A stretch of 64,000 nt of DNA. Source: Ascidiella aspersa (lineage: Eukaryota). Below are positions 1 to 31,654 of the stretch, in pieces; positions within the stretch are counted from its first letter, which is position 1; the number at the start of each line of letters is the position of its first letter. The notes below the pieces were generated by a model. It made no database searches, was not told the origin of the DNA, and saw only the letters and a list, made by a program, of their open reading frames with translations. The stretch is taken from contig OZ004608.1 of NCBI GenBank assembly GCA_963924565.1, forward strand, positions 6,324,001 through 6,388,000, in the 5' to 3' direction. Both the position numbers and the translations under genes were made by a program.

Positions 1-112
1 AATTAAGTATAGTGACACAAATAAAAATAAATTCTTCAATAAATATACAGTTTTTAAATTCGTCTGTGGCCCACCTAAAGAGTTTCCATGGCCCACTGGT
101 TGAGAACCGCTG
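1..112. mobile_element. Right part of a hAT-type MITE (full copies at 22914-23250 and 27187-27523)
   Basis: Ends in GGTTGAGAACCGCTG, the complement of the CAGTGGTTCTCAACC TIR seen in the full copies. Confidence 0.7.
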
Positions 113-613
113 CCCTAGTGGTATAATTGTAAATATCTGCTAAAGCTGTATTTCATAGTTTGACACTATAAAGAGTTTTTAAAGTTTCTCGAGCTTTTAG
201 GTATTCCGTTTTATTATGATTTGTTTTAAAGTATCCTACCATGCTTAGTTGCTAGTCTTACTCAACAAAACTAGGGATGGGAATAAAAAAATATTGGTTT
301 GTGCTATGAGTGTTAAGAACGAAACCAGCATAAAAAAAACGGGAAATTGTAAGGAACACGATTATTTTGAAGTACCGGTACAAAAACCTTTTAAAATAAT
401 GGAAAAGCAAACTATATACGACTGACTGTAACAAAAATATGGGATCTACTTGGAAAATAGTTTTGTTTATAACAATTTTAATTGGATGTGTTGCATGTTT
501 CAACTAACATTTTCAAATGCTGGAAGAGCATCTTATTTTTTGGGCGACAACCTATTTGAGGTTCGAATTTACTTTACTTTGAGGAGCAGATGTAATTTTC
601 TATTGCTTCTTAC

Positions 614-3600
614 CGTTGTAGATATGCTTCTGTTGAGGGGGACAAGCAATGGGAATTTCGTAGGCACCTTCCGCGACAACCCCAGGTATATTATTGGTTG
701 ATCTAAAAATGAGATTTTATTACATGTTAACTGTTAAAGTGAACAATTAAATACTATTTTAATAATCGCATTATTAAATACAGTAAGGCAGCGATTTTTT
801 TGACATGTTACTCTCGTTTTCTCTGTGGCCGTAATTGGAATAAAACAGTTTCGAAAAAAGCTGATATTATTTCGAACTTTCATGCGACAGATTTTTTTAA
901 ATGGTTTTAATGGTGCTTAATGAATGGGTTTGTTTATACGAGGGATGCAGGATGGGTTAAAATTAGTCCCAGACGGACTTCGGCAAAATTTGCAAACTCC
1001 GTCGAGGTCCGAGTTCGGCTCTCACTCTATACAGTCTGTGTTGCACTGATTTATACAACAACAAAAAATAAGGTTGATATACAGCCATCTAACTGTAGGG
1101 TGTCATAGGCTATATCTCAAGCACCCACAATACGTTGGTGGAAATAGTCCACTATATGCTATTGCAACTTTACAATTCACAGTTGGCAGCCTTTTCGTTC
1201 TCGAACTTGTTACTGCGCATGCGCACGTCCAAATCGTGGCTCTCGTGTAATCTTACGAAGTCTTACTCGAGTTTGATTTTCTCCATATATACCGACTCAA
1301 GTACCGAGTCGGACTGAGAATCCACAAAAGCTAACAAAGGAGCTTAAAAACGCTTATAAGTGGAATATATAAAATGTTTAAACTGATAAGGTATGAAAAG
1401 TTTAAACTGGTTAGGCATAGTTATCTTAACTGAAATATTTTAAAATAAATTTGCAAGTTTTACTTATAGCCATCCAGTGTTTTTTTTAAGGTGTTTTGGG
1501 GGACCGAAACGATCCCCCAAATTTCTCCAGCGGTTTCCCAAAATTTGGACTTGCAACTCTGCCAGTAGCCTAATAAATAATTCGTTTAAGCAAATATGGC
1601 TATTTTTTGGTATTTAAATGAAACACTTGCGGTCTCTTGAAACTACTTAGCGGTCACCCAAACCAAACCTTAAAAAAAACCTGGTCATATCAAACCAATT
1701 AAAATTTCTTACGCATTTCGAACATGTTTGAGTCGAATAGAATGTCTTTTCAGGCAGCATATCAACAACACAATAATGCAGACGGATGCCAACAGCAGCG
1801 ATACAAGGACAGCTATCACTGGCACTTGGAATTGAAGCGTTTCATTCTGAGTGGACGTGGGTTGAGCTGCAAAAGACGTAATGGCTCAGTGGTTTGCATT
1901 GGTAGCATATTCAGGACTTAAGATGTTCGAAACTTCCATAATTTACGGTAACTCGACTATTCGTTAACGACCTCATGGTGGGTTAATCAGTTTTATATTT
2001 CGGCACTTTTGAGTTAAAGCATAACCATTATAAATATAAAAGCTTTTAAAATAAATGTTTGCATCATAGGCGTGCTGATAAACACCTTAAAAGGTTACTG
2101 TGCAACATTAGTGACAAACATTGGCCCTTAATGATTAGGCCTATTTTTATGTACTTCAAGGCTGTTTTAAATGGCCTGCCCCAGAACACAAATACTTCTA
2201 AAGCAGTGGTTCTTAACCTTTTTTCAGCCGCGCCCCTCTTTGGTAATTTTCTCATTCCTTGCGCCCCCCTATGAAAATATTTCCACCTTTTGCAATTAAA
2301 TATCACTGAGAAAACAGGAAAATAGTGAAGGGTGTTGTTGGTCGCGCGAAGCGCGAAAAATATTGAGTTTTATTTGGTCGAATTGGCTAAACTGCAACCG
2401 AAGAGGCGTTTCGCATTGGTCACAGAACAAATTGCGCGAGCTCGACACATTGATTTTATCGAGCTGATTTTGACAAACGTGTTGCGAGGGCATTTACTCC
2501 ACAGTTGTAAGAGTTGTATAATGTCGAGCGCAAATATTATACATTGCGTTATCGTGTTTCAAAAGATGTAACGACACACAATACAACGGCAATATTGCAA
2601 AAACAATATATGTTGCTATTATCTGTTATCATATATAAAATATGGATGAAAAATAGTCCGAAAGGGCGATAGCTTTTATCGTTTATCTATAAGTTAATTT
2701 AATAGGGAGGTGATACCGTGGATTTTCTTAAAAGGAATTAGATTCGCGCGCAGCGCGAAAAATTGTTGCAGTTTTAATGTTAAAGTTCGCAAAAAACAGA
2801 GTTTGTATGTAGGAATTATTTTTCCTAACCCAAACGAAACCATTAGAATCACTGCAAAAAGTTAAAATATTGAAGTCGAGCTCGCGCACCCCCTTAGAAT
2901 TGCTTGGCGCCCCCCAAGGGGGGCACGCGCCCCCGGTTAAGAAACGCTGTTCTAAAGTCTTCATTGCAGGGAAATGTTAAAAAAATAAATATAATTAGGA
3001 AAACCTCCCGGTTTGAGAAGCAAAACTAAATGATTGTTTACGTATTATTAGTTGTAGTGCAGTTCTACCAACTGTTTTCATTCAAGAGAAACCCACCGTT
3101 TGTTTAGAATTATTTTTAGTTTTTTAATGCATTAAACGTGGGTTTGATGTATTTTTTTAACGAAGGCCCAGTTTGGAACTTGAACGAGTATAGAAGTAAG
3201 AGGTCGGGTCTGAACATACTGTTGAAAATGCGGAGCGCAATTAAAACATGCGGCAACAAATTTAATTTAAAAAGTAAATATTTGATTTTGAATATCTGAG
3301 ATAAATATTTAAATTTGAATATTTGATAACATTATTTTATTTTCCCTGAATTTTAACAGTAAGATTATACTATCACTATTAAATCTCGGATATAGTTTGA
3401 AAATACATTATTCGCAGAACAGTATAATAACCTGAAGGCGGCGATTAGCCTTTAAGCACACACAACAATCGTCTTAATATGTCAACTACTTTTGGGTCAA
3501 ACCTGTATGTGATGTGTTGGACACATCGTACGTTGTTGTTGTGACTGTGACTGGTACAAAGTTTCTTCCAAGTTTCACGGATGTCGCTGAAATTGAAGCC

Positions 3601-6600
3601 GGTTGTGTCGGAACGGTTGATGGAGCTAGTTCCCGGGCAGTTACAACTGCGATAGATAGCACAGCGTCTAATAAATGTTACGTTGTTTATTTGGCGGTGG
3701 TTTTGTTTAAATAAATGCAATGTAATTGAAAGTCGTAGTAAGAATTTTACAGCCCATACACAAGTAGGCATAATTTTAAACGTTTTGAATATCTTTTATT
3801 CATTTTTAAGATGTCTGAATAAAGAGCTATTCGAAACGTTCGAAATGATACCAACTTCTGTATGGGCTGTGATATTCTTACCAAGTCTTACTACAAGCTC
3901 CAACCATAGGGACTATGCTTCAATTGCAAGTGTTGGCAAACGGGACAACTTAAGTTAGCGGTACAGGCAAAATAACCCTAATAGTCCACGACAACCTAAA
4001 AGTAAAATTATTTTGGTATTTGTATTAAGTCCAAGATAAAACGAGAAAAACAAACAAAACCAATAGAATGGCAATTTTAATTACAAACTTTGTAATTTAT
4101 AGGTGGTGGTGCCTAAATTTAAACACTAAAATAACTGGTGGCGGTCGTTTCAGGCCGTCTTTTAAGCCAATTTCTATATTATAGATAGCCAGTTAAACAT
4201 GTAAGCTTGCTTTTAATGTAGACGAATACAGTACAGGTATATAAGAGGCATAATATGTATAGGCGTAGGCAAGAGGTTCTCAAACTGTGCGTCGTTTCCA
4301 GTGTTGTAATGACTTGTAAACGACGTCGCCGTATTTAAATGACTTAACTTGACCTAAAGTATTTTGGACAAATGACTTGACTTGACTTAAGTCGTTGTGT
4401 CAAATAACTTAAATTACGTGTTTTCATCAAATTTTTATTAATAAATTTTGGATATTAATCTCCAGTTTAAGACATAAAACAACTTGCTTGCTGTATGTTA
4501 GATTTTTGTTATTTTTTTTGTTGATTTAAGGCTCATAATCGGACGAGGTTACTAATTTTAATAATTTTACGCTTTATTTTTCTTGAAGTTGACTTGCTCT
4601 AATAATGACTTGAGTTGGGCAACTGATGACTTATGACGGTCTGGGACTTGACTCGGTATTGTTTAAAATGAGACTTAAGTCATTTCAAATTGAATTGTTT
4701 ACCACACTGCTGGTCGTTTTTATTTTTCAAGGGCGTTGCACAGAGTGATTATGTTTTGCGGGCTTCTCAAATTAAATTGCGCCTAAAGGTTTTTAATTGC
4801 GGCTATACATTGCTTTGCGGCTAAACATTGCTTCTAGATAAATTATTATTCTTTGCTTGTCACTTGCTGCAAGTTGTTTTATGTTTGAAAGTATGACGAT
4901 TTACCCACACTTAAACTAAATTAAAGCAATCCTGTGCAAAAACCCACTTTAGATCTAATTTGTTATGCTAAAGTTTTTGTTAATTTCTTGCGCTGTAGTT
5001 TCGTTTGCTTTGTTTTCTATGGTGTGCTTTTCATACATAATATAGTTAAATGACAATAATTAAATATCCTATAGCTAGGTGCGTCGAAAGACAAACAGCG
5101 TCGCGAGATATAGTTTCAGGACCACTGGAGTAGGCACCAGAAATAAACTGGTGGCCCACGTTTTTTGTCTTCACAATGCAATTTATACTTAAGAAATGCG
5201 CGCCACCATAAGCCATTCAAAAAGTATACTTTATTGGCCGACTACCTGTTGTTGTCTTGGAAGAGGTTGCGGCGACAGTTGCTGGTGATTTTTGAGTTGT
5301 TCTGGAAGTAGTTAGAACCGTTGTTGAAGGTGGAGCAAAGATTAGTAGGTGCGTCGTGGTTCTCGCTCTTGTTGCAGTAGTTGAGGAAGTTGCGGCGACA
5401 GTTGCTGGTGATTTTTGAGTTGTTCTGGAAGCAGTTGTTGATGAAGGTGGAGCAAAGGTTAGTAGGTGCGTCGTGGTTCTCGCTCTTGTTGTAGTAGTTG
5501 AGGAAGTCGTTGGGATGGCTGGTTTCGGTGTAGTGGTGCTGAGTTTGGTTACTGGAACTTAACATGAAATTTGTTGAAAACGTAATTGAAACAACCGTGT
5601 AACGTATATAGCTATGTAATGGCATTTGGCAAAGGTAAACAGTTTGCTGATTAATGTTGCGAAGCCTTAAAGTTTATACATTTGTTGACTTTACATTTTT
5701 GATACACAACCACAAATAAAACACTTGAAATTGCAAATCTCTTTCAATGAAGCATGTAGCATACAATGCACAACATGCAGCATACGATGAGACTAGACTT
5801 AATTTTATGTTTCTCGAATTTCATCACCGCTGAGCCTGTTAATCAAAGTTGGTTTAGTGCGAGGTATACGTTATGGTCAAGGAGCCATGTATTTTAATCG
5901 CACCACACTATATAGACCACGAAAGTGAAAACTAGGACCAGTGGCGGAGCCAGCCGAAAAGTTTGTGGGGTGGGGCAAAAATATTTGTTGTTTAGCTTTT
6001 ACCATTGTGTTAACTGCCGTAACGAACACAAATAACAATGCTAGCAAACCGTTTCGAGCAGCAACGGACTGAGTGTTAACGCAATACTCAAAAAACAGTC
6101 AATGAGTAAAATCTGTCTGAAAGTAGTAAAAGTACATTAATGTATAGTAAATGTTATAATAACTACATCGTTTGTGACGTAACAATGCCTGACAATTGAA
6201 GGTGTGGCATGCCTGTGATCAAATGTTGTGGTACTGCTCATAAATGCTACAAAAAATGTATTAAGAGTAAAATATTTATAATTTTTTTTGGCCATGGCCC
6301 CTCATGGCCCCTCAGGCCTTTTGGCCATGGGCCATGGCCCCTCAGGCCCCCCCCCCTGGCTACGCCTATGACTAGGATCCCTAGGCCAAATGTGACCTAC
6401 AAAACGATAATATATTGCCCGCGGGAATTTTAGTCCGGCAAGAATAATATTTTAAAAGTAAAACGAATGTAAATCGCACAGCCAATTTGTCAACCCCACA
6501 TTTATAATTTGTCAACCCCACATTTACAATTTGTCAATCCCACATTTACAATTTGTCAACCCCACACATTTATTAACCAAGAACAACACTACCGGTACTA

Positions 6601-7648
6601 ATTATTAGCCTTTCCCATCGTCAACTTGCCTGCATTGAGATCATTTAGATACAATCGAATGTTTTAAAATAATATCGGCACGATATGTGCCAATATTTCA
6701 ATAGTAAACAAAACTGGCTTCGGTCTGCCTAGTTTTTATTTAGAAGTACTTTCTGTATGTACAGAACAGTGTTTCTCAACATGCGACATCAGTACCACTA
6801 CTGACACATTAAGGCAGTTTAGGTGGTACGAGATCAGCTTTTATATAGGTGTAATGCTTTATATGTGACACAATTTATTACTGATTCACAAAGTAATCTT
6901 TACTCTTTGCCCCATTTAATGCACATATAACCTTCAATTTGCGGCAACCGCTGGAAACGACTGGTTTTGGACATATGATTTGGGCCAAATAGTTTCAGCG
7001 CCTGTAAACTACAAGTTTGAGGATAACTGGTATGGAGCGTTAATTTATTCTCTACCCTAAGTTATAATTTCGAAATTACCTTTAGTTTTGTTCTATAAAG
7101 CGAAAGTGTCACGCCAAAATTGAATAAATTATCAGCTTAACTTACCCACGCTTCTTTGGCAAACGTATGCAAGACGTTGGTTGCAAACAAAATCGTCCCA
7201 AGCCTCAGTTTGATTGAATCCAATAATAACACAATCCTCAGTTCCGGCATCGTTGTTAGGTTGTCCTCTTCTCCAGTTTGACCATGTCAGTTTTGATCCG
7301 TCCAACCAGTGGAACTCATAGGTTGTTACGTATCGCTTCAAACCGATGTAAAACTTTTTACGTGTACCTGGATGTGTTTATAAATTCATTTAAAAATAGA
7401 CAAGCAAGTTATATCATGTCAAATCTCAAACCTGCAATATTCACCACGAAATCACTTATTTTTGGCGATTTGAGTTCAACCAACGTTGATTGCATTCCCT
7501 TGCATGCTTCTAGTGCGTCATTGTACGTTTTTGGATTATTTGTCACAATGCGATATTCCAATTTGTCCAACCTATGCCAATTGACAGCGCGGGTTTTACA
7601 AAAAAGAAAGCTTACAAATATAGCAAAAACGCAATATATTGCTACCAT
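614..7648 (-). CDS. C-type lectin receptor 1: signal peptide, CTLD, long Thr/Ser mucin stalk, TM, YxxP cytoplasmic tail (last exon lies left of the window)
   Basis: Phase-compatible GT-AG exons 7648-7432, 7367-7146, 5557-5246, 3667-3503, 1866-1713, 702-614. CTLD motifs EAC, FYIGL, WLDGS, QPN, EDC, WDD.VC, YVCQ. TM VPVIAVLVSLLLASVCIIVLLICCL followed by KRHSIRLK. Tail AYEIP...HIYN. The homologous last exon is seen in the paralogous block at 22823-22708. Confidence 0.85.
2204..2949. mobile_element. Non-autonomous hAT (Charlie-like) MITE
   Basis: TIRs CAGTGGTTCTTAACC / GGTTAAGAAACGCTG with a perfect 8-bp TSD TTCTAAAG on both sides. Confidence 0.85.
3738..3881. repeat. Imperfect foldback inverted repeat, ~65-bp arms
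   Basis: GTAAGAATTTTACAGCCCATACACAAG...TTTATTCA is the near reverse complement of TGAATAAAG...CTGTATGGGCTGTGATATTCTTAC. Confidence 0.75.
4271..5127. mobile_element. Degenerate hAT MITE with a nested GACTT-rich element (4299-4709)
   Basis: Ends AAGAGGTTCTCAAACT / AGTTTCAGGACCACTG with near-TSD GCGTAGGC/GAGTAGGC. The nested element has ends CAGTGTTGTAA / TTACCACACTG; relatives occur near 17.3-17.7, 34.9-35.4 and 38.9-39.4 kb. Confidence 0.6.
5265..5507 (-). repeat. Two ~117-123 bp coding tandem repeats in the mucin exon (TSSTT[T/A]TRARTTTHLL.FAPPS...SRTTQKSPATVAA)
   Basis: Direct repeat visible in the DNA; the frame entered from the phase-1 acceptor is Thr/Ser/Pro-rich. Confidence 0.85.
5939..6370. 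mobile_element. MITE with CAGTGGCGGAGCCAG / CTGGCTACGCCTATG ends
   Basis: Imperfect TIRs with 8-bp TSD ACTAGGAC/ACTAGGAT. Confidence 0.75.
6484..6570. repeat. 22-bp minisatellite (AATTTGTCAACCCCACATTTA[T/C]) x4
   Basis: Four tandem units here; only one unit in the paralogous blocks (26286, 30559). Confidence 0.85.
6767..7029. mobile_element. Degenerate hAT MITE in the intron after the CTLD (paralogous copy ~30775-31032)
   Basis: CAGTGTTTCTCAAC ... AGTTTGAGGATAACTG; TSD is degenerate. Confidence 0.5.
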
Positions 7649-10600: not shown

Positions 10601-11113
10601 TAAACTCCTACAATTCGAAGATTGTTAATTATTGTATCATGTTATCCAAGCGAAAACTAATACTTGTTTAAAACGCAATTTATTTTTACTGGTGTTTAAT
10701 ATTCTGGCGACCATGAATTTATCTGTATTAGCAATAACCTGGAGTTTAAGCGAAAAGTGCTCTCAATTAATTAAAACACCAAATCCGGCGTAAGGAGCTC
10801 TGTTACAGTAAAAGGCAATGGCGAAATACTTGTCCAGAAAACAATATAAAATTATAGAACCTTTGTAAAAAATAACGATTGATTAAATATCAAATTACAC
10901 GCCTTTTAATGGCAGAAATTTTCACGGCATATCAATCAAAGCAAGACGGTTTGGTAGGCCATGCTACATAACACAACCACAAAAAGAACGCTTTATCCCT
11001 TCCTCTGCTGCAAAGCAACATTACGGGGTATTCTGGGCTCTGACTGGGAGTTACTGAAATTCGACTACGATACAATTTAGTTGATGTTCCTCTTCGACAT
11101 TTTGTAGAAACAG

Positions 11114-14066
11114 TTAAATAGTTGAACCCTTAGTCACAGCAGTAAACATTTCCTCGGTCTTTGGTTTGCTGTCAGCATTTGTAAGATGATAAGCTGCTTC
11201 GTAGGCGAAAATGTAAGTTTGAGACAACTCTTGGTTATTTTCACTTTCTTTGGAGCCTGCGTCTCTATTATCACAAATAGGGGAAGTAGCTATACGACCT
11301 GTAAAGCAAACCTGTATGTACACCACAATTATGCAAATTAATATACAGTACTATTAAAACCAACAACAAAACGAAAACGAGATAAAATAAGACAACAAAA
11401 TTCAACATAAGACCCAAATCTGTTGGAGTACGTCCAACCGTAATAAGGTATAAATTGCCTAATTGACATCTGAAGCAGCATTGTTTGAGCAGCGGTATGT
11501 TTGTCCTTGGTTAGGAGAAAAGGTTGGGTCATGGGTGGGGTCAGAAATTTGGTGGATGATGATGGCGTTATTTATGAGCTGGTGCATAAGTTATGGTTGG
11601 CGTTTTGTTTTATGTAAAGGTTAAATCTTATTCTGACTGTTTACGACTTATTTCGATCTAGTTTCTCTACTGAATTTGGTGTTATTGCTAGAGTCCACAT
11701 GCAAGTTCAGTTCTAACATATTTGTTCATATTCAAACGATATTAATTAGCGCACAGTGCGTTGGGCTGTTAACTCCCGTTTTGAGTTGTATTTTGAAACC
11801 AACTACCGCTAATGCAATGTTTGATCTTTTTATAGAAAGTATTACGCCTACTTCTCTATATTTCATGAATTTTGCTTATTTTAAGCAAAACATTACGCCA
11901 TTTTATATCGGATCGCAATGCTGTATTTTTCTCGAAAACATAAGGATAATAGATTGGTAAAAAGAACTACACATTGTCAGAAATATTTATGGTCGTGCTG
12001 AATAATTAGTAATATTATATTGTCGTGCAACACTATAACCGACATGTAAAAACGCATTCGATGGACTTACCATTCGACGGTTCGGAGTACTCCACTTCCT
12101 GTTCAGGTAATATAAGGTTGTCTGCCACCGTACTGTATTCCAGAATCAATCTTCGCTCTTCTTCATGACTTTCCCAATAAGGCGCTGGTTCAGCTGAAGC
12201 TGCCAAGGTTGCCATTTCTGTTCTATTTAGGCGTGAATACTTGTTGGGGTCTTGTTGTGCTGCTTCCAGTTGTAACACCGCATATTCTGGCCACGTTGGC
12301 AGCTCGTACTCATTTTCTACTTGTAAAAAATCGTTGAATATGGTATTTTATAACTGACATAATTGGTAATTAATGCTAAACCCGTGCCATCAGGTCGCCC
12401 ATTAGGACCAAATAAAACGTCTATTCTAAAAAGAACTAACAACCAGCTAGCCATTACATGAAATTTATATTAAAAATGATCAATGCCACATAAATGAGTA
12501 TCAATAATTGTTTAATATAATATCTATAGGAAAATTGAGCAATTTATGATCGGAGAAGAGTGCAAACTAGGACTTGTCTGACTATGTGCCCATAAAGGAG
12601 CCGTCCCTTTTAAAAATGTAGTGACCCCTATTTTATATCAACTATATCGATTTTTAGAATTTTTGAAAAAAAATTCAACACCAAGGAAAAAAAAAGCATA
12701 ACAATTCTAAATTTCACCAATGATTACCGTTCTTCGGTGGTTCCGTTTTCTGACATTTCCTGCAATGAGAAACAAACGAAAGTTATTCCCTCCCACCTAT
12801 ATACTATAGGTTTGCATCAACCAAATCTTCCACCCACCTCAGCCAATACATCGCAGCAACAACTGCGCAGCAAAGAAGCACAGCTCCAGCGATTAAAGCC
12901 ACCAGTGTTGTGGTTATGTTTCGCGTAAACTTTGTGGGCGGTGTTGTACTGTTGACTGTGAAATAGCACGCCTTATTATTTGTAATACCTAAAAGTCTTA
13001 GAAGGTCACAGAAGTTGGTTTGAAAAGTTCGCCTAACTTGATTGTCCTTATGGCCACACCCGAAGTCACATTGTACAACGTCTGCTAGCCTAGAAGTACG
13101 TTTTGTTTAATTAACAAAATAATAAAGTTACCAGCAATAGCTAAACAACAGACCGCAAAATCGAGAATTTTTTTTAGCTACAATTAGGAAATTTTTAGTG
13201 CACCCATTCACCTTGCGGTCCTGCGTCTGTTGCTATTCTGTCGGACACACGTGAAGGCGTACTTTTGAAATTCGCCTGATCTGAGATGTTTAAACCAAAT
13301 ATATATAGTTAATGAGTAAATTATGCATATTTCTCATACCCCTGGTTATCAATAGTCTTGCTATTTTCGCCATGGCTCCTAACACGCTACGTTTTTATAC
13401 GTCCAGTATTAAGACTTATAAAACAATAACTGGATAACTGGTATGGAGCGTTAATTTATTCTATATACTACCCTAAGTTATAATTTCGAAATTGCCTTTA
13501 GTTTTGTTCTATAAAGCGAAAGTGTCATGCAAAAATTGAATAAACTATCAACTTAACTTACCCACGCTTCTTTGGCAAACGTATGAAAGACGTAGTGAGC
13601 AAACGAAATCGTTCCAAAACTCAGTTTGACCCCCCAACCCAATAACAACACAATCCTCAGTTCCGACAACGTTATTAGGTTGTCCTATTCTCCAGGTCGA
13701 CCATGTCAGTTTTGATCCGTCCAACCAACGGAACTCATTGGTTGTTACGTCTCGCTTCAAACCGATGTAAAACCCTCCACGTGTACCTGGATGTATTTAT
13801 AAATACGTTAAAAATATAACAGCCACTTACGTCATGTCAAATCTCAAACCTGCAAGATTCGCCACGAAATCATTTATTTTGGGGGATTTGAGTTCAACCA
13901 ACGTTGATTGCATTCCCTTGCATGCTTCTAGTGCGTCATTGTACGTTTTTGAATCATTTGTCACAACGAGATATTCCAATATGTTCAACCTATGCCAACT
14001 GACAGCACAGGTTTCACACAAAAGAAAGCTGACAAATATCGGCAAAACGTAATATATTGCTACCAT
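11114..14066 (-). CDS. C-type lectin receptor 2: signal peptide, CTLD, short stalk, TM, long tail with ITAM-like and ITIM-consensus tyrosine motifs
   Basis: Phase-compatible exons 14066-13850, 13786-13562, 13280-13212, 12955-12838, 12759-12728, 12420-12382, 12316-12071, 11298-11114. CTLD has QPN and WND. TM LVALIAGAVLLCCAVVAAMYWL then RKCQK. Tail ENEYELP, EYAVL-x11-YSRL, LEYSTV, VEYSEP, ending GSTI*. The small exons and last exon are less certain. Confidence 0.78.
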
Positions 14067-14089
14067 TGTCCTATATCCTTGCAGACAAT

Positions 14090-19008: not shown

Positions 19009-19234
19009 TAGCTAATCTGATAAAGGTGGTCTACACATATAGGTTTTATAACGGTAATAATATCGTAAATTGCATTAATAGAGACTATTACAACTCTTGA
19101 TGTGCACCAACAAAGCTCTTTAGACTTTAAGATTACTCAGTGACGGTCGGCAAGCATAATAAAGAGAATAAAAATTCCTAAACCATCCATAACACCTTAA
19201 GCTCACATATAAAAATTTCAATTAAAATATAAAG

Positions 19235-21200: not shown

Positions 21201-22707
21201 AATGCGAACAATGGCTGCTACAGCTTAACGTTTTACGTTTGTGAGCGGTTCTCTATCGATATACGTCACGCGTTTTCGTTACGTAAAATATGTTTGTCGT
21301 GGTAAGCCATTGGGCATTTAGTCGTTTCATTTCAACAAGCACACAATATTGCATTTTTTACTACATATTACTGTTTATTTTACGAAAACGAAGTATTAAA
21401 TATTTCACAGTCACACAGATAAATGCGAGATTTTATAACACGCCATCCCATTAAATGCTACTTCCACACAAGCTAAAAGGCGTGACTCCAATTGTGGGAA
21501 AGCACAGTTAACCCATTTCAGGCACAATCAGCAAAAAAACAGTCCAAAACAGTCCAGGAACGATCAACACATATAGGCTGTATAGCAATTAACGATAAGG
21601 AAATTTAACATGTTTTAATTAAGGGAAACTAAAATGTGTACCACTTTACACACTATTTAGCACTCTAGCCAGGATATTACGCTGTCCGTAACATTACGTT
21701 TTGATAACATGGTAAATTGCCTTTTTAAATCATCGGCAATTACACGCAGCTTAAGAAAATGACGCAAAGTTCAAGATAATGTGTAATAGTTCTTAAGAGA
21801 CCACAGCTTGAGGGAAGCTTGCATTTTTTTAAAACTATACATGAGAATAATTCGGGGAATACGAATTTGTTATGGACACAGAATTTTCCCACTATGTAGG
21901 GTCTAATGTTGTAGCTGTTTTCATGATGCCGCAAGCGGATTGCTTTAGGATTTTGAAAGCAGTCAACGGAGCCGGGGATTAAACTCCTCGGAAAATCTTG
22001 TTGCAGAGTTTGTGAAGGGAAAAGTTGCTTTTTCAAGGGGCTGCAAGACTGTCATTCGTATGGTGTCAGTTTGCTGTTATATCCGTATTTGATATTTACC
22101 GTGACTTGTGGGTTGGGTTTTTCAAAATCGGCAACGTATTTAACTTATCCCCATCGATTATTTTGTTTAATTTTACCCCTTAAAAGTTAATAATATATGG
22201 GTTGGGTGGCTTTGAGATATTACTTAGAAAAAGGCCGATTTTAGCGGTGTCGGTTTAAGTTAATACTTTTTAAGTTAGCATTTGTATTTAACGCCAAAAT
22301 GTCATTATTCCAGCAACAAGGAACGTAGCGTTGTTTTTTATAATGTGCGCAAAAACTTGCACGCGAAAACGTAATAGAAAAATATAATAAACATTAACCA
22401 ACACGCACAAAAATTATATACTATTCACATTGTCATATAGACTTTAGTTACAAGTCTAAAAATCTGTGTTAACTATTTTGCACAGCTTTCATGAGTGGTC
22501 TTCAACTCCAATTAAAATAAAAGGTAAAACGTGCGTTTTAATGATTGCTTTGGTTTGCTAATCTTTCATTAGCTTGACATTGATAAACAAGCGAACCAGA
22601 CAACAGGCTTAAATGTGTTAAGGAAAATCCGGGTTGTTTTAGTGAGCCATTGAAACGGGTATTAAAGTATAATGTGGAGGGAACAGAAAGCATAAGGGTT
22701 AACTTTA

Positions 22708-24999
22708 CTATGCAGAGAACTCCACGTATCCCTGGTCTCTTTCCTCACTTCCACGGGACGGAAATATAGGGTTGGGTTCCACGTAACCATTTTCTTCGTC
22801 TTCGTCAACAATTTCTAATGGAACTGAACAAAAATGTTGTAAACCTAAAGAGGCGATGTGTTAATAACCTATAAACTCTTTTTTGTAAATGGCCGATTTT
22901 TATTACCCTAGAACAGTGGTTCTCAACCTTTTTTCTTTTGTGAGCCGTTTTCGTTGCACAAAAATACTTTGGCCCAATAAATGTTTATAAAAGAACAAAC
23001 TATGAAAAAGGTTTAGAACAAAAAACAGCGGAGCATCTATCAAAACAGATTATTTATTTAACCGTGCATTAGTGAGATTGCTTCTGAACAATAAGTTTAC
23101 ATTGGTTCTCGATTCCTCCCCAAGCCATTATTCCTGTAAAATTAAGTATAGTGACACAAATAAAAATAATTCTTCAATAAATATACAGTTTTTAAATTCG
23201 TCTGTGGCCCACCTAAAAAGTTTCCATGGCCCACTGGTTGAGAACCGCTGCCCTAGTGGTATATTTGCAAATATCTGCTAAAGCTGTATTTCATAGTTTG
23301 ACATTATAAAGAGTTTTTAAAGTTTCACGAGCTTTTAGGTATTCCGTTTTATTATGATTTGTTTTAAAGTATCGTACCATGCTTAGTTGCTAGTCTTACT
23401 CAACAAAACTAGGGATGGGAATAAAAAATATTGGTTTGTACTAAGAGTGTTACGAACGAAACCAGCATAAAAAAACGGGAAATTGTAAGGAACACGATTA
23501 TTTTGAAGTACCGGTACAAAAACCTTTTGAAAGAATGGAAAAGCAAACTATATACGACTGACTGTAACAAAAATATGTGATCTACTTGGAAAATAGTTTT
23601 GTTTATAACAATTTTAATTGGACGTGTTGCATGTTTCAACTAACATTTTCAAATGCTGGAAGAGCATCTTATTTTTTGGGCGACAACCTATTTGAGGTTC
23701 GAATTTACTTTACTTTGAGGAGCAGATGTAATTTTCTATTGCGTCTTACCGTTGTAGATATGCTTCTGTTGAGATGGACAAGCAATGGGAATTTCGTAGG
23801 CACCTTCCGCGACAACCCCAGGTATATTATTGGTTGATCTAAAAATTAGATTTTATTACATGTTAACTGTTAAAGTGAGCAATTAAATACTATTTTAATC
23901 GCATTATTAAATACAGTAAGGCAGCGATTTTTTTGACATGTTACTCTCGTTTTCTCTGTGGTCGTAATTGGAATTAAACAGTTTCGAAAAAAGCTGATAT
24001 CATTTCGAACTTTCATGCGACAGATTTTTTTAAATTGTTTTAATGGTGCTTAATGAATGGGTTTGTTTTTATACGAGGGATGCAGGATGGGTTAAAATTA
24101 GTTCCAGACGGACTTCGGCAAAATTTGCAAACTCCGTCGAAGTCCGAGTTCGGCTCTCACTCTATACAGTCTGTGTTGCACTGATTTATACAACAACAAA
24201 AAATAAGGTTGATATACAGCAATCTAACTGTAGGGTGTCATAGGCTATATCTCAAGCACCCACAATACGTTGGTGGAAATAGTCCACTATATGCTATTGC
24301 AACTTTACAATTCACAGTTGGCAGCCTTATCGTTCTCGAACTTGTTACTGCGCATGCGCACGTCCAAATCGTGTCTCTCGTGTAATCTTACGAAGTCTTA
24401 CTCGAGTTTGATTTTCTCCATATATACCGACTCAAGTACCGAGTCGGACTGAGAATCCACAAAAGCTAACAAAGGAGTTTAAAAACGCTTATAAGGGGAA
24501 TATATAAAATGTTTAAACTGATAAGGTATGGAAAGTTTAAACTGGTTAGGCATAGTTATCTTAACTGAAATATTTTAAAATAAATTTGCAAATTTTACTT
24601 ATAGCCATCCAGTGTTTTTTTAAGGTGTTTTGGGGGCCGAAACGATCCCCCAAATTTCTCCAGCGGTTTCCCAAAATTTGGACTTGCAACTCTGCCAGTA
24701 GCCTAATAAATAATTCGTTTAAGCAAATATGGCTATTTTTTGGTATTTAATTGAAACACTTGCGGTCTCTTGAAACTACTTAGCGGTCACCCAAACCAAA
24801 CCTTAAAAAAAACCTGGCCATATCAAACCAATCAAAATTTCTTACGCATTTCGAACTTGTTTAAGCCGAATAGAATATCTTTTCAGGCAGCATATCAACA
24901 ACACAATAATGCAGACGGATGCCAACAGCAGCGATGCAAGGACAGCTATCACTGGCACTTGGAATTGAAGCGTTTCATTCTGAGTGGCCGTGGTTTGAG
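22708..24999 (-). other. Second copy of the lectin-3 TM+tail exon cassette (exons 24999-24846, 23838-23750, 22823-22708) with no lectin exons of its own
   Basis: Same splice sites and reading frame as 29272-26982. Confidence 0.75.
22914..23250. mobile_element. hAT-type MITE in the last intron of the receptor tail
   Basis: TIRs CAGTGGTTCTCAACC / GGTTGAGAACCGCTG; near-TSD CCCTAGAA/CCCTAGTG. Confidence 0.8.
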
Positions 25000-26981
25000 C
25001 TGCAAAAGACGAAATTGCTTAGTGGTTTGCATGTGTAGCATATTCAGGACTTAAGATGTTCGAGAAACTTCCATAATAGACTATTCGTTAACGACAGGCT
25101 GGGTTAAAGTTTTATATTCATGCTGGGTTAAAGTTTTATATTGCGGCACTTTTGAGGTAAAGCATAACCATTATAAATATAAAAGCTTTTAAAATAAATG
25201 TTTGCATCATAGGCGTGCTGATAAACACATTAAAAGGTTACTGTGCAACATTAGTGACAAACATTAGCCCTTAATGATTAGGCCTATTGCTTCAATTGCA
25301 AGTGTTGGCAAACGGGACAACTTAAGTTAGCGGTACAGACAAAACAACCCTAATAGTCCACGACAACCTAAAAGTAAAATTATTTTGGTATTTGTATTAA
25401 GTCCAAGATAAAACGAGAAAAACAGACAAAACCAATAGAATGGCAATTTACATTACAAACTTTGTAATTTATAGGTGGTGGTGTCTAAATGTAAACACTA
25501 AAATATCTGGTGGCGGTCGTTTCAGGCCGTCTTTTAAGCCAATTTCTATATTATAGATAGCCAGTTAAACATGTAAGCTTGCTTTTAATGTAGACGAATA
25601 CAGTACAGGTATATAAGAGGCATAATATGTATAGGCGTAGGCAAGAGGTTCACAAACTGTGCGTAGTTTCCTGTGTTGTAATGACTTGTGCACGACGTCG
25701 CGGTATTTAAATGACTTAACTTGACCTAAAGTATTTTGGACAAATGACTTGACTTGACTTAAGTCGTTGTGTCAAATAACTTAAATTACGTGTTTTCATC
25801 AAATTTTTATTAATAAATTTTGGATATTAATCTCCAGTTTAAGACATAAAACAACTTGCTTGCTGTATGTTACGTTTTTGTTATTTTTTTGTTGATTTAA
25901 GGCTCATAATCGGACGAGGTTACTAATTTTAATAATTTTACGCTTTATTTTTCTTGAAGTTGACTTGCTTTAATAATGAGTTGAGTTGGGCAACTGATGA
26001 CTTGGTCTGGGACTTGACTCGGTATTGTTTAAAATGAGACTTAAGTCATTTTAAATTGAATTGTTTATCACACTGCTGGTCGTTTTTATTTTTCAAGGGC
26101 GTTGCAGAGAGTGATTATGTTTTGCGGACTTCCCAAATTAAAAGCTCCTCAGCCCCCCCCCCTGGCTACGCCTATGGGACCCCTAGGCCAAATGTGACCT
26201 ACAAAACGATAATATATTACCCGCGGCAATTTTAGTCCGGCAAGAATAATATTCTGAAAGTAAAACGAATGTAAATCGCACAGCCAATTTGTCAACCCCA
26301 CATTTTTCAAGGGGCTGCAAGACTGTCATTCGTATGGTGTCAGTTTGCTGTTATATCCGTATTTGATATTTACCGTGACTTGTGGGTTGGGTTTTTCAAA
26401 ATCGGCAACGTATTTAACTTATCCCCATCGATTATTTTGTTTAATTTTACCCCTTAAAAGTTAATAATATATGGGTTGGGTGGCTTTGAGATATTACTTA
26501 GAAAAAGGCCGATTTTAGCGGTGTCGGTTTAAGTTAATACTTTTTAAGTTAGCATTTGTATTTAACGCCAAAATGTCATTATTCCAGCAACAAGGAACGT
26601 AGCGTTGTTTTTTATAATGTGCGCAAAAACTTGCACGCGAAAACGTAATAGAAAAATATAATAAACATTAACCAACACGCACAAAAATTATATACTATTC
26701 ACATTGTCATATAGACTTTAGTTACAAGTCTAAAAATCTGTGTTAACTATTTTGCACAGCTTTCATGAGTGGTCTTCAACTCCAATTAAAATAAAAGGTA
26801 AAACGTGCGTTTTAATGATTGCTTTGGTTTGCTAATCTTTCATTAGCTTGACATTGATAAACAAGCGAACCAGACAACAGGCTTAAATGTGTTAAGGAAA
26901 ATCCGGGTTGTTTTAGTGAGCCATTGAAACGGGTATTAAAGTATAATGTGGAGGGAACAGAAAGCATAAGGGTTAACTTTA

Positions 26982-29900
26982 CTATGCAGAGAACTCCACG
27001 TATCCCTGGTCTCTTTCCTCACTTCCACGGGACGGAAATATAGGGTTGGGTTCCACGTAACCATTTTCTTCGTCTTCGTCAACAATTTCTAATGGAACTG
27101 AACAAAATGTTGTAAACCTAAAGAGGCGATGTGTTAATAACCTATAAACTCTTTTTTGTAAATGGCCGATTTTTATTACCCTAGAACAGTGGTTCTCAAC
27201 CTTTTTTCTTTTGTGAGCCGTTTTCGTTGCACAAAAATACTTTGGCCCAATAAATGTTTATAAAAGAACAAACTATGAAAAAGGTTTAGAACAAAAAACA
27301 GCGGAGCATCTATCAAAACAGATTATTTATTTAACCGTGCATTAGTGAGATTGCTTCTGAACAATAAGTTTACATTGGTTCTCGATTCCTCCCCAAGCCA
27401 TTATTCCTGTAAAATTAAGTATAGTGACACAAATAAAAATAATTCTTCAATAAATATACAGTTTTTAAATTCGTCTGTGGCCCACCTAAAAAGTTTCCAT
27501 GGCCCACTGGTTGAGAACCGCTGCCCTAGTGGTATATTTGCAAATATCTGCTAAAGCTGTATTTCATAGTTTGACATTATAAAGAGTTTTTAAAGTTTCA
27601 CGAGCTTTTAGGTATTCCGTTTTATTATGATTTGTTTTAAAGTATCGTACCATGCTTAGTTGCTAGTCTTACTCAACAAAACTAGGGATGGGAATAAAAA
27701 ATATTGGTTTGTACTATGAGTGTTACGAACGAAACCAGCATAAAAAAACGGGAAATTGTAAGGAACACGATTATTTTGAAGTACCGGTACAAAAACCTTT
27801 TGAAAGAATGGAAAAGCAAACTATATACGACTGACTGTAACAAAAATATGTGATCTACTTGGAAAATAGTTTTGTTTATAACAATTTTAATTGGACGTGT
27901 TGCATGTTTCAACTAACATTTTCAAATGCTGGAAGAGCATCTTATTTTTTGGGCGACAACCTATTTGAGGTTCGAATTTACTTTACTTTGAGGAGCAGAT
28001 GTAATTTTCTATTGCGTCTTACCGTTGTAGATATGCTTCTGTTGAGATGGACAAGCAATGGGAATTTCGTAGGCACCTTCCGCGACAACCCCAGGTATAT
28101 TATTGGTTGATCTAAAAATTAGATTTTATTACATGTTAACTGTTAAAGTGAGCAATTAAATACTATTTTAATCGCATTATTAAATACAGTAAGGCAGCGA
28201 TTTTTTTGACATGTTACTCTCGTTTTCTCTGTGGTCGTAATTGGAATTAAACAGTTTCGAAAAAAGCTGATATCATTTCGAACTTTCATGCGACAGATTT
28301 TTTTAAATTGTTTTAATGGTGCTTAATGAATGGGTTTGTTTTTATACGAGGGATGCAGGATGGGTTAAAATTAGTTCCAGACGGACTTCGGCAAAATTTG
28401 CAAACTCCGTCGAAGTCCGAGTTCGGCTCTCACTCTATACAGTCTGTGTTGCACTGATTTATACAACAACAAAAAATAAGGTTGATATACAGCAATCTAA
28501 CTGTAGGGTGTCATAGGCTATATCTCAAGCACCCACAATACGTTGGTGGAAATAGTCCACTATATGCTATTGCAACTTTACAATTCACAGTTGGCAGCCT
28601 TATCGTTCTCGAACTTGTTACTGCGCATGCGCACGTCCAAATCGTGTCTCTCGTGTAATCTTACGAAGTCTTACTCGAGTTTGATTTTCTCCATATATAC
28701 CGACTCAAGTACCGAGTCGGACTGAGAATCCACAAAAGCTAACAAAGGAGTTTAAAAACGCTTATAAGGGGAATATATAAAATGTTTAAACTGATAAGGT
28801 ATGGAAAGTTTAAACTGGTTAGGCATAGTTATCTTAACTGAAATATTTTAAAATAAATTTGCAAATTTTACTTATAGCCATCCAGTGTTTTTTTAAGGTG
28901 TTTTGGGGGCCGAAACGATCCCCCAAATTTCTCCAGCGGTTTCCCAAAATTTGGACTTGCAACTCTGCCAGTAGCCTAATAAATAATTCGTTTAAGCAAA
29001 TATGGCTATTTTTTGGTATTTAATTGAAACACTTGCGGTCTCTTGAAACTACTTAGCGGTCACCCAAACCAAACCTTAAAAAAAACCTGGCCATATCAAA
29101 CCAATCAAAATTTCTTACGCATTTCGAACTTGTTTAAGCCGAATAGAATATCTTTTCAGGCAGCATATCAACAACACAATAATGCAGACGGATGCCAACA
29201 GCAGCGATGCAAGGACAGCTATCACTGGCACTTGGAATTGAAGCGTTTCATTCTGAGTGGCCGTGGTTTGAGCTGCAAAAGACGAAATTGCTTAGTGGTT
29301 TGCATGTGTAGCATATTCAGGACTTAAGATGTTCGAGAAACTTCCATAATAGACTATTCGTTAACGACAGGCTGGGTTAAAGTTTTATATTCATGCTGGG
29401 TTAAAGTTTTATATTGCGGCACTTTTGAGGTAAAGCATAACCATTATAAATATAAAAGCTTTTAAAATAAATGTTTGCATCATAGGCGTGCTGATAAACA
29501 CATTAAAAGGTTACTGTGCAACATTAGTGACAAACATTAGCCCTTAATGATTAGGCCTATTGCTTCAATTGCAAGTGTTGGCAAACGGGACAACTTAAGT
29601 TAGCGGTACAGACAAAACAACCCTAATAGTCCACGACAACCTAAAAGTAAAATTATTTTGGTATTTGTATTAAGTCCAAGATAAAACGAGAAAAACAGAC
29701 AAAACCAATAGAATGGCAATTTACATTACAAACTTTGTAATTTATAGGTGGTGGTGTCTAAATGTAAACACTAAAATATCTGGTGGCGGTCGTTTCAGGC
29801 CGTCTTTTAAGCCAATTTCTATATTATAGATAGCCAGTTAAACATGTAAGCTTGCTTTTAATGTAGACGAATACAGTACAGGTATATAAGAGGCATAATA

Positions 29901-31654
29901 TGTATAGGCGTAGGCAAGAGGTTCACAAACTGTGCGTAGTTTCCTGTGTTGTAATGACTTGTGCACGACGTCGCGGTATTTAAATGACTTAACTTGACCT
30001 AAAGTATTTTGGACAAATGACTTGACTTGACTTAAGTCGTTGTGTCAAATAACTTAAATTACGTGTTTTCATCAAATTTTTATTAATAAATTTTGGATAT
30101 TAATCTCCAGTTTAAGACATAAAACAACTTGCTTGCTGTATGTTACGTTTTTGTTATTTTTTTGTTGATTTAAGGCTCATAATCGGACGAGGTTACTAAT
30201 TTTAATAATTTTACGCTTTATTTTTCTTGAAGTTGACTTGCTTTAATAATGAGTTGAGTTGGGCAACTGATGACTTGGTCTGGGACTTGACTCGGTATTG
30301 TTTAAAATGAGACTTAAGTCATTTTAAATTGAATTGTTTATCACACTGCTGGTCGTTTTTATTTTTCAAGGGCGTTGCAGAGAGTGATTATGTTTTGCGG
30401 ACTTCCCAAATTAAAAGCTCCTCAGCCCCCCCCCCTGGCTACGCCTATGGGACCCCTAGGCCAAATGTGACCTACAAAACGATAATATATTACCCGCGGC
30501 AATTTTAGTCCGGCAAGAATAATATTCTGAAAGTAAAACGAATGTAAATCGCACAGCCAATTTGTCAACCCCACATTTATTAACCAAGAACAACACTACC
30601 GGTACTAATTATTAGCCTTTCCCATCGTCAACTTACCTGCATTGAGATCATTTAGATACAATCGAATGTTTTAAAATTATATCGGCACGATATGTGGCAA
30701 TATTTCAATAGTAAACAAAACTTGCTTCGGTCTGCCTATTTTTTATTCAGAAGTACTTTCTGTATGTACAGAACAGTGTTTCTCAACTTGCGACATCAGT
30801 ACCACTACTGACACATTAAGGCAGTTTAGGCGGTACGGGATCAGCTTTTATATAGGTGTAACGCTTTATATGTGACGTAATTTATTACTGATTCACAAAG
30901 TAATCTTTACTCTTTGCCCCATTTAATGCACATATAACCTTCAATGTGCGGCTACCGCTGGAGCTACTGGTTTTGGACATATAATTTGGGCCAAATAGTT
31001 ATATCGCCTGTAAAATACAAGTTTGAGGAACTGGTATGGAGCGTTAATTTATTCTATATACTACCCTAAGTTATAATTTCGAAATTGCCTTTAGTTTTGT
31101 TCTATAAAGCGAAAGTGTCATGCAAAAATTAAATAAACTATCGGCTTAACTTACCCACGCTTCTTTGGCAAACGTATTCAAGACGTAGTGAGCAAACGAA
31201 AGCGTACCACGCCCCCATTTGATCCAATCCAAAAATAACACAATCCTCAATTCCGAAAACGATATTAGGTTCTCCTATTCCCCAGTTCGACCATGTCAGT
31301 TTTGATCCGTCCAACCAGTGGAACTCATCGGTTGTTGCGTCTCGCTTTAGGCCGATGTAAAACTTTTTACGTGTACCTGGATGTGTTTATAAATACATTT
31401 AAAAATAGACAAGCAAGTTATATCATGTCAAATCTCAAACCTGTAAGATTCGCCACGAAATTGTTTATTTTTTGGGATTTGAGTTCCACCAACGTTGATT
31501 GCATTTTCTTGCATGCTTCTAGTGAGTCATTGTAGGTTTTTGGATTATTTGTCACAGCGCGATATTCCAAGTTGTCCAACCTATGCCAACTGACAGCGCA
31601 GGTCTCACACAAAAGAAAACTTACAAATATTGTTAAAACGCTATATTTCACCAT
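26982..31654 (-). CDS. C-type lectin receptor 3: signal peptide, CTLD (EPN / WYA), no mucin stalk, TM, YxxP tail
   Basis: Exons 31654-31441, 31376-31155, 29272-29119, 28111-28023, 27097-26982 splice in frame. Tail ...EGAYEIPIACPSQQKHIYNVPLEIVDEDEENGYVEPNPIFPSRGSEERDQGYVEFSA*. Confidence 0.85.
27187..27523. mobile_element. hAT-type MITE (duplicate of 22914-23250)
   Basis: Same TIRs and flanks, inside the tandem duplication. Confidence 0.8.

Follow-up and report, generated by a model that had tools for sequence, protein, structure and literature searches.

We propose, at a probability of roughly 60%, that Ascidiella aspersa possesses a large tandem family of type I receptors, each bearing a single C-type lectin domain (CTLD), in which the heads have been re-paired with conserved tyrosine-motif tail cassettes and would thus be coupled to different outputs. 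The window, by which we mean the whole 64,000-nucleotide stretch of contig OZ004608.1 analysed here, holds three such genes (lectins 1, 2 and 3), which judged by their sequence are members of a tandem family whose lectin exons number well over 100. All three look like type I CTLD receptors, their signal peptides, transmembrane (TM) helices and positive-inside residues fitting the predicted topology. The head is made of two exons, encoding the signal peptide and a canonical CTLD that has four cysteines and a Ca2+/sugar site of the EPN/QPN type, and is followed by one of a few conserved tail cassettes. The exon chains read as follows.

Lectin 1, 7432..7648, minus strand: exon 1, with ATG, signal peptide and CTLD N-half (Lectin_C match); phase-1 donor G|GTTTGAG
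Lectin 1, 7146..7367, minus strand: exon 2, CTLD C-half (QPN...WDD; Pfam E 1.9e-9); phase-1 donor G|GTAAGT
Lectin 1, 5246..5557, minus strand: candidate stalk exon, mucin-like and Ser/Thr/Pro-rich, phase 1 to 1
Lectin 1, 1713..1866, minus strand: TM-A exon, with short stalk, TM helix and basic stop-transfer
Lectin 1, 614..702, minus strand: juxtamembrane exon, YEIP and IY|N(VP)
Lectin 1, 305-430 nt before the window start, minus strand: final exon, verified in adjoining sequence
Lectin 2, 13850..14066, minus strand: exon 1, signal and CTLD N-half
Lectin 2, 13562..13786, minus strand: exon 2, CTLD C-half, with QPN...E...WND complete
Lectin 2, 13432..13561, minus strand: start of the phase-1 intron after the CTLD, of which ~125 nt are homologous in all three genes by sequence comparison
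Lectin 2, 12838..12955, minus strand: TM-B exon, 17 copies across the genome
Lectin 2, 12728..12759, minus strand: basic juxtamembrane mini exon of 32 nt, phase 2 to 1, present in one paralogue too
Lectin 2, 12071..12319, minus strand: tail-B exon, with YELP, YAVL-x11-YSRL, LEYSTV and VEYSE; 14 copies, invariant tyrosines
Lectin 2, 11114..11298, minus strand: last exon, ending ..STI stop; 10 copies
Lectin 3, 31441..31654, minus strand: exon 1
Lectin 3, 31155..31376, minus strand: exon 2, with EPN, and WYA in place of WND
Lectin 3, 29119..29272, minus strand: TM-A exon
Lectin 3, 28023..28111, minus strand: YEIP exon
Lectin 3, 26982..27097, minus strand: final exon, with acidic run, GYVEPNPIFP, GYVEF and stop; 37 genome copies
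Lectin 3, 22029..26305, minus strand: second copy of the tail cassette, 99.95% identical (TM-A ~24846-24999, YEIP ~23750-23838, final ~22708-22823)

Every exon junction of the three genes is bordered by AG and GT, the exon phases are consistent along the chains (0>1, 1>1, 1>2, 2>1, 1>1, 1>stop), and the summed coding sequences of 798 nt (lectin 1), 1026 nt (lectin 2) and 795 nt (lectin 3) are multiples of three and stop-free. An earlier note had proposed that lectins 1 and 3 continue into one common tail, and this is borne out: both carry tail A, assembled from the TM-A, YEIP and final exons with frames intact and displaying the motifs YEIP, YNVP (spanning a splice junction), YVEP and YVEF. 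The companion claim, that lectin 2 sits on an unrelated tail, stands for its chain of TM-B, mini, tail-B and last exons, which is different, but not for the exon-phase framework and the membrane-proximal YE[VIL]P, which are common to both classes. Because the exon chains recur in ~25 paralogues with conserved splice sites, the pattern lies far beyond chance. The stalk candidate of lectin 1 falls within an insertion absent from lectin 3, and open frames homologous to it occur three times in one paralogue; it was revealed by a plain open-frame scan, an automated search that demanded strict donor patterns having returned no phase 1-1 exon rich in Ser/Thr. The second tail cassette at 22029..26305 may have arisen by tandem duplication not long ago, or it may be a duplication introduced in the assembly; the duplicated tract extends over 22029-30578.

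The heads share an identical two-exon structure with identical intron positions and are 88-91% identical in DNA. To describe them as nearly the same, as had been done, is nevertheless an overstatement, since identity in protein is only 74-77%. Translations of exon 2 matched Pfam PF00059 above the gathering score in lectin 1 and lectin 2 (E 8.2e-8 for the latter), whereas a 58-residue open-reading-frame fragment of lectin 3 and all three exon 1 translations gave partial matches just under the cut-off, as is expected of partial, N- or C-terminal domains. The C1-C4 cysteines and the FYIGL core are visible in all three heads. At the predicted Ca2+/sugar site 2, for which EPN or QPD, a Glu and WND are typical, lectin 1 reads QPN...E...WDD, lectin 2 QPN...E...WND and lectin 3 EPN...E...WYA; the lectin 3 site appears degraded, with the WND part lost. 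Between the most closely related genes the heads show a dN/dS of 0.65-1.6, and across paralogues the tails are better conserved than the heads.

A wider search for family members and tail types, which the earlier note had recommended, proved fruitful: the cluster, which lies on a single chromosome, holds at least 137 CTLD exons, together with tail A, tail B, a hybrid tail and a third TM type. Our gene survey covered 328 kb of the array, all of it outside the cluster middle at C2:6.06-6.26 Mb, and within these 328 kb tail A was assigned to 14/25 genes and tail B to 9/25. Genes of the two classes alternate along C2:5.87-6.36 Mb in close linkage. In 23/25 tabulated genes one tail cassette, in the same exon order and phases, comes no more than a few kb behind the head. 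When lectin 2 is compared with distant paralogues, DNA matches are confined to exons, with none at introns. Some family members contain stops. The hybrid tail, found in at least one gene, joins a tail-B exon to a tail-A final exon and, together with the third TM type, implies that the system is combinatorial and not binary.

How might such combinations arise? The homology between lectin 2 and lectins 1 and 3 ends ~125 nt into the post-CTLD intron, at ~13432-13436 (7021 in lectin 1, 31029 in lectin 3). In a second independent pair, C2:6040631 and C2:6032858, a head block of 2.2 kb that is 96% identical ends ~270 nt into the same post-CTLD intron. Furthermore, when tail class is placed on the head tree, at least three changes of class are required, all of them forced by well-supported branches. 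The suggestion that modules have been swapped at the phase-1 intron is thus supported, because two independent recent head copies end inside that intron, and it is echoed by the incongruence between head tree and tail class. Fast-evolving heads would be copied between neighbours through recombination or gene conversion ending in the post-CTLD phase-1 intron, with the consequence that the same recognition domain may become coupled to different cytoplasmic outputs. The tail module of lectin 2 also exists as a headless copy, 95-96% identical, 650 kb away. Y-to-D differences that contigs from a DNA run display in the last exon of lectin 2 were considered as alleles and rejected as such: the contigs stop exactly at 11681 and match this paralogous tail copy, at C2:6985612-6987077, which has the same residues.

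Tails A and B are long, at ~90 and ~170 residues respectively. Within the tail-B exon, Y5, Y13, Y62 and Y78 are invariant (8/8) and Y28 is kept in 7/8; the extra tyrosines of the lectin 2 last exon are not conserved. The ITIM consensus [SIVL]xYxx[IVL] is present in 8/8 tail-B exons; lectin 2 has LEYSTV, the seven paralogues VEYSTV. Lectin 2 additionally possesses an ITAM-like pair, YAVL-x11-YSRL, with the same spacing in 7/8 tail-B exons, which fits the broad, Draper-type definition (x6-12) only and not the canonical YxxL/I-x6-8-YxxL/I. Among aligned tail-A copies, AYE[VI]P is found in 15/15, GYVxPNPVFP in 17/20 and GYVEF in 17/20, and neither an ITIM-consensus site nor an ITAM-like pair occurs. 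The hemITAM [DE][DE][DE]xYxxL is absent from tail A, where 4-5 acidic residues lead into x-G-Y-V-x-P; position +3 from this tyrosine is Pro in 18/20 aligned copies and His or Leu in the other two. Both the TM-A and the TM-B helices are free of Asp, Glu, Lys and Arg. The matches concern short, degenerate motifs, and a YxxPhi site can double as a sorting signal. A profile built from eight tail-B exons found no match among 1.84 billion representative proteins at E up to 0.001, so that tail B has no cross-species support; for so short and fast-evolving a tail, the result is hardly informative about longer kin.

Could the tails be illusory? Were the genes to encode secreted lectins, with read-through from the CTLD to a stop after ..GKLS, the TM and tail frames would be unrelated or dead. 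A stop does lie four codons past the CTLD donor in all three genes (3/3), and soluble receptor isoforms arising via intron retention are common. An RNA run (X3) placed 0 reads on lectin 2 (window 8200-14199), but with only ~6% of the run sampled this speaks neither for nor against the exon junctions. Nevertheless, 27/27 paralogous exon 2 copies keep the phase-1 donor directly behind C-Q-R-x-x, in the same position and phase, among heads down to ~35-45% identity, the tail exons remain open, in phase and conserved over ~25 genes where introns are not, and heads and tails duplicate as joint units, all of which makes secretion as the sole fate highly improbable. A role for the genes as endocytic or scavenger receptors, their tyrosine motifs, NPxF and acidic clusters serving as sorting signals (AP-2 YxxPhi, PTB-type NPxF and acidic-cluster lysosomal targeting), appears quite unlikely, and it is just as doubtful that the two tail classes would route cargo differently without signalling. 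Vertebrate endocytic C-type lectin receptors such as DEC-205, DC-SIGN and the mannose receptor do bear tyrosine motifs and triacidic clusters, YSTL, YSHL, YSTV and YVEF match YxxPhi, and tail A combines NPVF with 4-5 acidic residues ahead of a tyrosine. Conversely, each tail has at least five conserved tyrosines, with acidic residues before each as in tyrosine-kinase substrates, Pro at +3 (YEVP, YVKP) misfits YxxPhi, and the ITAM-type spacing is exactly conserved. Endocytic and signalling roles are not mutually exclusive.

Paired immune receptors have very similar ectodomains, opposite signalling and close linkage, the activating member combining a short tail with a charged TM residue, through which an ITAM adaptor is recruited (PMC3533184). 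That the ascidian genes are paired receptors in this vertebrate sense, with an inhibitory and an activating tail class that respond to identical or similar ligands and serve to discriminate pathogens or self from non-self, we consider unlikely. In its favor are related heads that neighbouring genes combine with one or the other of two conserved tail classes, a recurring arrangement, along with the invariant ITIM-consensus [VL]xYSTV of tail B, tight gene clustering, fast head evolution and a tunicate precedent, the ITIM/hemITAM receptor families of allorecognition (PMC12582321). However, the idea of opposing tails, which had been part of the original interpretation, survives only insofar as related heads do sit on different tail modules: the ITIM and the ITAM-like pair share one tail, tail B, whereas tail A has neither of these, nor a hemITAM (P, not L, at +3), nor a charged TM residue. 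The signature of an activating member, a short tail with a charged TM residue, is found in neither class. As for very similar ectodomains, the second pair offers 96% identity over 2.2 kb, but the window heads reach only 74-77% in protein and differ in sugar-site residues (QPN/WDD, QPN/WND, EPN/WYA). The hybrid tail and third TM type again speak for a combinatorial arrangement. Re-pairing of heads with tail cassettes that would differ in output is the reading that we carry forward.

In a search of a limited literature collection, no description was found of ascidian type I CTLD receptors that form a family and bear ITIM/ITAM tails. The lectins of the vertebrate NK complex (Ly49, NKG2/CD94, NKR-P1 and the Dectin-1/2 clusters) are alike in their CTLD heads, dense tandem clusters, fast head evolution and related heads with different outputs, and also in an ITIM-type motif in one class and a hemITAM-like acidic run before a tyrosine. 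They are, however, type II proteins with an N-terminal tail, whereas the ascidian family is type I; their activating members are short-tailed and recruit DAP12/FcRgamma by a charged TM residue, in contrast to the long tyrosine-rich tails and uncharged TM of both ascidian classes; and the vertebrate hemITAM has L where the ascidian acidic-run tyrosine has P at +3. The likeness in sequence, as far as seen here, is that of the CTLD fold. Layilin, chondrolectin and oyster membrane C-type lectins share the order of signal, one CTLD, short stalk, TM and cytoplasmic tail, but such layilin-type proteins are single-copy or form small families with unrelated tails, and we know of none that constitutes an array of 100-plus genes with alternative tail cassettes.

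Another comparable system is the Fester/FcoR family of Botryllus schlosseri, a clustered type I multigene family with dynamic copy number and tails that contain ITIM, hemITAM-like and 'core' tyrosine motifs (PMC12582321). Both are tunicate type I multigene clusters with tyrosine-motif tails, and in both motifs are swapped between variants. Fester proteins belong to the immunoglobulin superfamily and owe the swapping to alleles and to alternative splicing inside one gene, whereas the lectins have CTLD heads and appear to be varied between genes by recombination; of the two, Fester is the family with a link to allorecognition. The functional ITAM of Drosophila Draper (Y934/Y949, motif YxxI/L-x6-12-YxxI/L; PMC6219719) has the same Tyr-Tyr spacing of 15 residues as tail B. 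Draper/CED-1 is likewise an invertebrate type I receptor with an NPx[YF]-type site and acid-flanked tyrosines. It has EMI/EGF repeats in place of a CTLD and unites ITAM and NPx[YF] on one tail, whereas the ascidian ITAM-like pair (tail B) and NPxF (tail A) usually occupy separate genes, and the tails have no sequence homology.

If the receptors are expressed and inserted in the predicted orientation, they would probably operate as follows. Glycan ligands would drive receptor clustering, upon which a Src-type kinase could phosphorylate the acid-flanked tail tyrosines, perhaps first at the common YE[VIL]P site, and class-specific SH2/PTB effectors would be recruited to the phosphorylated tails. 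On tail B, YxxL-x11-YxxL may attract a tandem-SH2 kinase of the Syk/Shark type and [VL]xYSTV a phosphatase of the SHP type, singly or together; on tail A, YVN and YxxP could be docking points for adaptors of the Grb2/Crk/Nck type, and NPxF for a PTB adaptor. It is tempting to go further and speculate, with little confidence, that the 1.7 Mb array arose in a chordate as an independent equivalent of the NK gene complex, with CTLD heads that keep diversifying and being re-paired with inhibitory, activating and hybrid tyrosine-motif tails for self/non-self or pathogen discrimination by blood cells.

No invertebrates are more closely related to vertebrates than the tunicates, which, to our knowledge, lack MHC-based or antigen-receptor-based immunity. 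If confirmed, the lectin family would be a second tunicate receptor system that recombines recognition and signalling modules, after the immunoglobulin-type Fester/FcoR, and a convergent parallel to the NK-complex lectin receptors of vertebrates. It makes testable the questions of whether placing one sensor on alternative tyrosine-motif outputs is a recurring solution of innate recognition, and whether exon exchange between introns of compatible phase is a source of such pairs. Indeed, the family may be regarded as a set of natural head/tail chimeras that could be used for functional tests.

Lectins 1, 2 and 3 (start codons at 7648, 14066 and 31654) all lie on the minus strand of eukaryotic DNA with a G+C content of 36%. 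The DNA examined contained no run of N and nothing resembling human sequence. Each gene opens with an ATG, followed by a hydrophobic signal; the first exon ends at G/GTTTGAG in phase 1, an intron of 63-64 nt follows, and the second exon ends, again in phase 1, at G/GTAAGT immediately past the last CTLD cysteine and Q-R-S-V. These two exons, which form the head, correspond to the halves of Lectin_C in a Pfam match. Downstream, lectins 1 and 3 share one exon chain, as the earlier note had claimed: a TM-A exon, an 89-nt YEIP exon and a final exon encoding an acidic run, GYVEPNPIF and GYVEF. YNVP, also listed in that note, is created across a splice junction in both. After the head of lectin 2 come four different exons: TM-B, a basic one of 32 nt, one of 249 nt that encodes five tyrosines (sites YELP, YAVL, YSRL, YSTV and YSEP), and a last one whose product ends in STI. 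Since all acceptors and donors are canonical, phases are compatible and the coding sequences sum to stop-free lengths of 798, 1026 and 795 nt for lectins 1, 2 and 3, the original observation of three genes with a shared head structure is confirmed, down to an exact exon end at 614 and an exact start codon at 31654. One exon was found in flanking DNA:

about 305-430 nt before the window start, minus strand: final exon of lectin 1

Acceptor-like sites precede the start codons of both lectin 2 and lectin 3, making an untranslated 5' exon farther upstream likely. Just 5' of the same start codons, homologous open frames of 80-87 residues (14194-14436 and 31754-32017, minus strand) fall within a 5.5 kb upstream block common to both genes.

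Self-comparison of the window reveals a mosaic. The whole lectin 1 unit (1-7648) matches that of lectin 3 at 91-96%, lectin 2 matches lectin 3 at about 90% from the CTLD upstream over 5.5 kb, and the match of lectin 2 to lectin 1 is limited to 7021-7687. The description of the signal and CTLD exons as nearly the same holds for exon structure and intron positions but is too strong for the proteins, given their 74-77% identity, dN/dS of 0.65-0.96 among the window heads (1.6 against the nearest paralogue) and many changes around the sugar site (QPN/WDD, QPN/WND and EPN/WYA in lectins 1, 2 and 3, respectively). The heads are close paralogues in quick divergence, and may not have a ligand in common.

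Whichever genes of different tail class are compared, homology ends at the same position (about 13432-13436 in lectin 2, 7021 in lectin 1 and 31029 in lectin 3), some 125 nt into the phase-1 intron past the CTLD. C2:6040631, with tail B, and C2:6032858, with tail A, both on the cluster-bearing chromosome, form a second pair. They are 96.2% identical over 2.2 kb, a block that takes in upstream sequence, the two CTLD exons and some 270 nt of the next intron, and they are unalignable beyond it. A maximum likelihood tree of 25 heads resolved three clades (the window's three genes with one neighbour, tail-A genes only, and a mixed clade) and calls for at least three changes involving tail B, all forced by well-supported branches. 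Furthermore, a tail without a matching head lies 650 kb from lectin 2 in opposite orientation:

C2:6985612-6987077, plus strand: headless copy of lectin 2 TM-B and last exon, 95-96% identity

This copy lacks the 1082 nt between window positions 12764 and 11681 that hold the mini and tail-B exons. It accounts for the Y-to-D 'variants' in DNA runs on lectin 2, for which a reading as allelic polymorphism was rejected, and for a contig joint there that 'skips 1082'. Together, the tree changes, the second pair and the headless tail make repeated module exchange at the phase-1 intron a well-supported reading of these sequences, in line with the swapping originally proposed.

A genome-wide search for more members and tail types, which the earlier note had called for, was productive. 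Searched exon by exon, the 308 Mb assembly matched CTLD exon 2 in at least 137 places, almost all of them at 5.87-7.55 Mb on one chromosome. Copy numbers for the tail exons were 17 (TM-B), 14 (tail B), 10 (tail-B last exon) and 37 (tail-A final exon). Annotation by tblastn of 328 kb (the window plus 264 kb of neighbouring DNA) with the window's exons revealed about 25 heads, each with one tail cassette within a few kb: 9 tail B, 14 tail A and 2 assigned to neither class. A repeating unit of one tail-B and two tail-A genes was frequent. The phase-1 donor past the CTLD is kept in 27 of 27 exon 2 copies, including those whose heads are just 35-45% identical; one distant paralogue with tail B reproduces lectin 2 exactly in exon order, splice sites and phases; and DNA matches of lectin 2 to distant paralogues cover exons and no introns. 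It is chiefly on this conservation that the assignment of heads and tails to the same genes rests; that the lectins are purely secreted is accordingly given very little credence. A search of indexed RNA runs met the stretch in none of them, and among about 6% of the reads of one further RNA run none matched lectin 2, a sample that does not count as a test of its expression. In-frame stops in otherwise intact members (C2:5943304 exon 2, C2:5934341 exon 1 and the tail-B exon at C2:6983501) suggest that some copies are pseudogenes.

Tail cassettes also recombine among themselves, and a third TM type exists:

C2:6260142-6263859, minus strand: hybrid gene whose TM-B and tail-B exons run in phase into a final exon of tail-A type (GYVKPNPVFP...GYIEF)
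C2:6990178-6994180, plus strand: lectin 1-like head, 86% identical (QPD...WDD), then mucin exons and an unrelated TM exon of a third type

Exon-level matches to the tail-B exon and tail-A final exon suggest the same hybrid arrangement near C2:6110468 and C2:6183299. No cytoplasmic exons were found for the third-TM gene. Between its CTLD and TM, at C2:6991455-6993150, lie three frames homologous, at about 80% DNA identity, to an open frame at window 5246-5557 (minus strand) that is rich in Ser/Thr/Pro, about 100 residues long and bounded by phase 1-1 splice sites, inside an insertion of the long intron of lectin 1; the latter is likely an optional mucin stalk exon. A 4.27 kb tandem duplication (22029-26305 and 26303-30578, 99.95% identity) copies the TM-A, YEIP and final exons of lectin 3, and is either very recent or an assembly duplicate; the distal cassette would be redundant. 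The window also contains a repeat of about 640 nt in two direct copies of 90% identity (19332-19963 and 20416-21054), probably a mobile element, between the lectin 2 upstream region and the lectin 3 tail cassettes, and a perfect microsatellite of 6-bp period and about 300 nt (60822-61121).

The residues around the tail-B tyrosines are strongly conserved among the eight copies compared, four of the tyrosines being invariant in all eight and a fifth present in seven. The sites read E-N-E-Y-E-L-P, E-Y-x-x-L-Q-L-E, then (N/K)-x-Y-S-x-L eleven residues on, [VL]-E-Y-S-T-V-x-D-N and V-x-Y-S-E. By motif match [VL]xYSTV meets the ITIM consensus, and YxxL-x11-YxxL fits only the broad definition of an ITAM; its two tyrosines are 15 residues apart, as are Y934 and Y949 in the ITAM that functions in Drosophila Draper (PMC6219719). 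Of 1.84 billion representative proteins, none matched a tail-B exon profile. Tail A is conserved too, at V-V-x-E-S-A-Y-E-[VI]-P, at H-[VI]-Y, after which most paralogues have V-N-T-N (a YxN of Grb2 type), at four or five acidic residues before G-Y-V-x-P-N-P-V-F-P, and at G-Y-V-E-F near the C-terminus; this tail class carries no ITIM, ITAM or hemITAM (Pro at +3). Lectin 2 was said to have an unrelated TM and tail: its exon chain and YxxL/V-type motifs are indeed different, but in both classes a YE[VIL]P lies close to the membrane and the exon phases follow one scheme, 1>2 for the TM exon, 2>1 for the juxtamembrane exon and 1>1 or 1>stop for the later ones.

The paired activating and inhibitory receptors first envisaged, with similar heads on opposing tails, are an unlikely description of this family. 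A charged TM with a short tail is a defining feature of such pairs, and neither TM-A nor TM-B has a charged residue in its helix; ITIM-type and ITAM-type sites co-occur in tail B, and hybrid and third tail types blur the model further. That the tail motifs serve endocytic sorting seems slightly less probable again.

Among known systems the closest are the NK-complex lectin receptors of vertebrates; those are type II proteins that rely on adaptors, whereas the receptors here would be type I. The Botryllus Fester/FcoR families come next: they are of immunoglobulin type and exchange motifs through alleles and splicing (PMC12582321), in contrast to the CTLD heads here. Draper-type tails provide a third comparison. 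In the literature searched we found no earlier account of this CTLD family. The architecture of the genes, taken by itself, is very probably that of a CTLD receptor family. For the mechanism as a whole, the best-supported reading, to which we give a probability of about 0.6, is that A. aspersa would possess a large family of CTLD receptors, type I in topology, whose tyrosine-motif tails are exchangeable.
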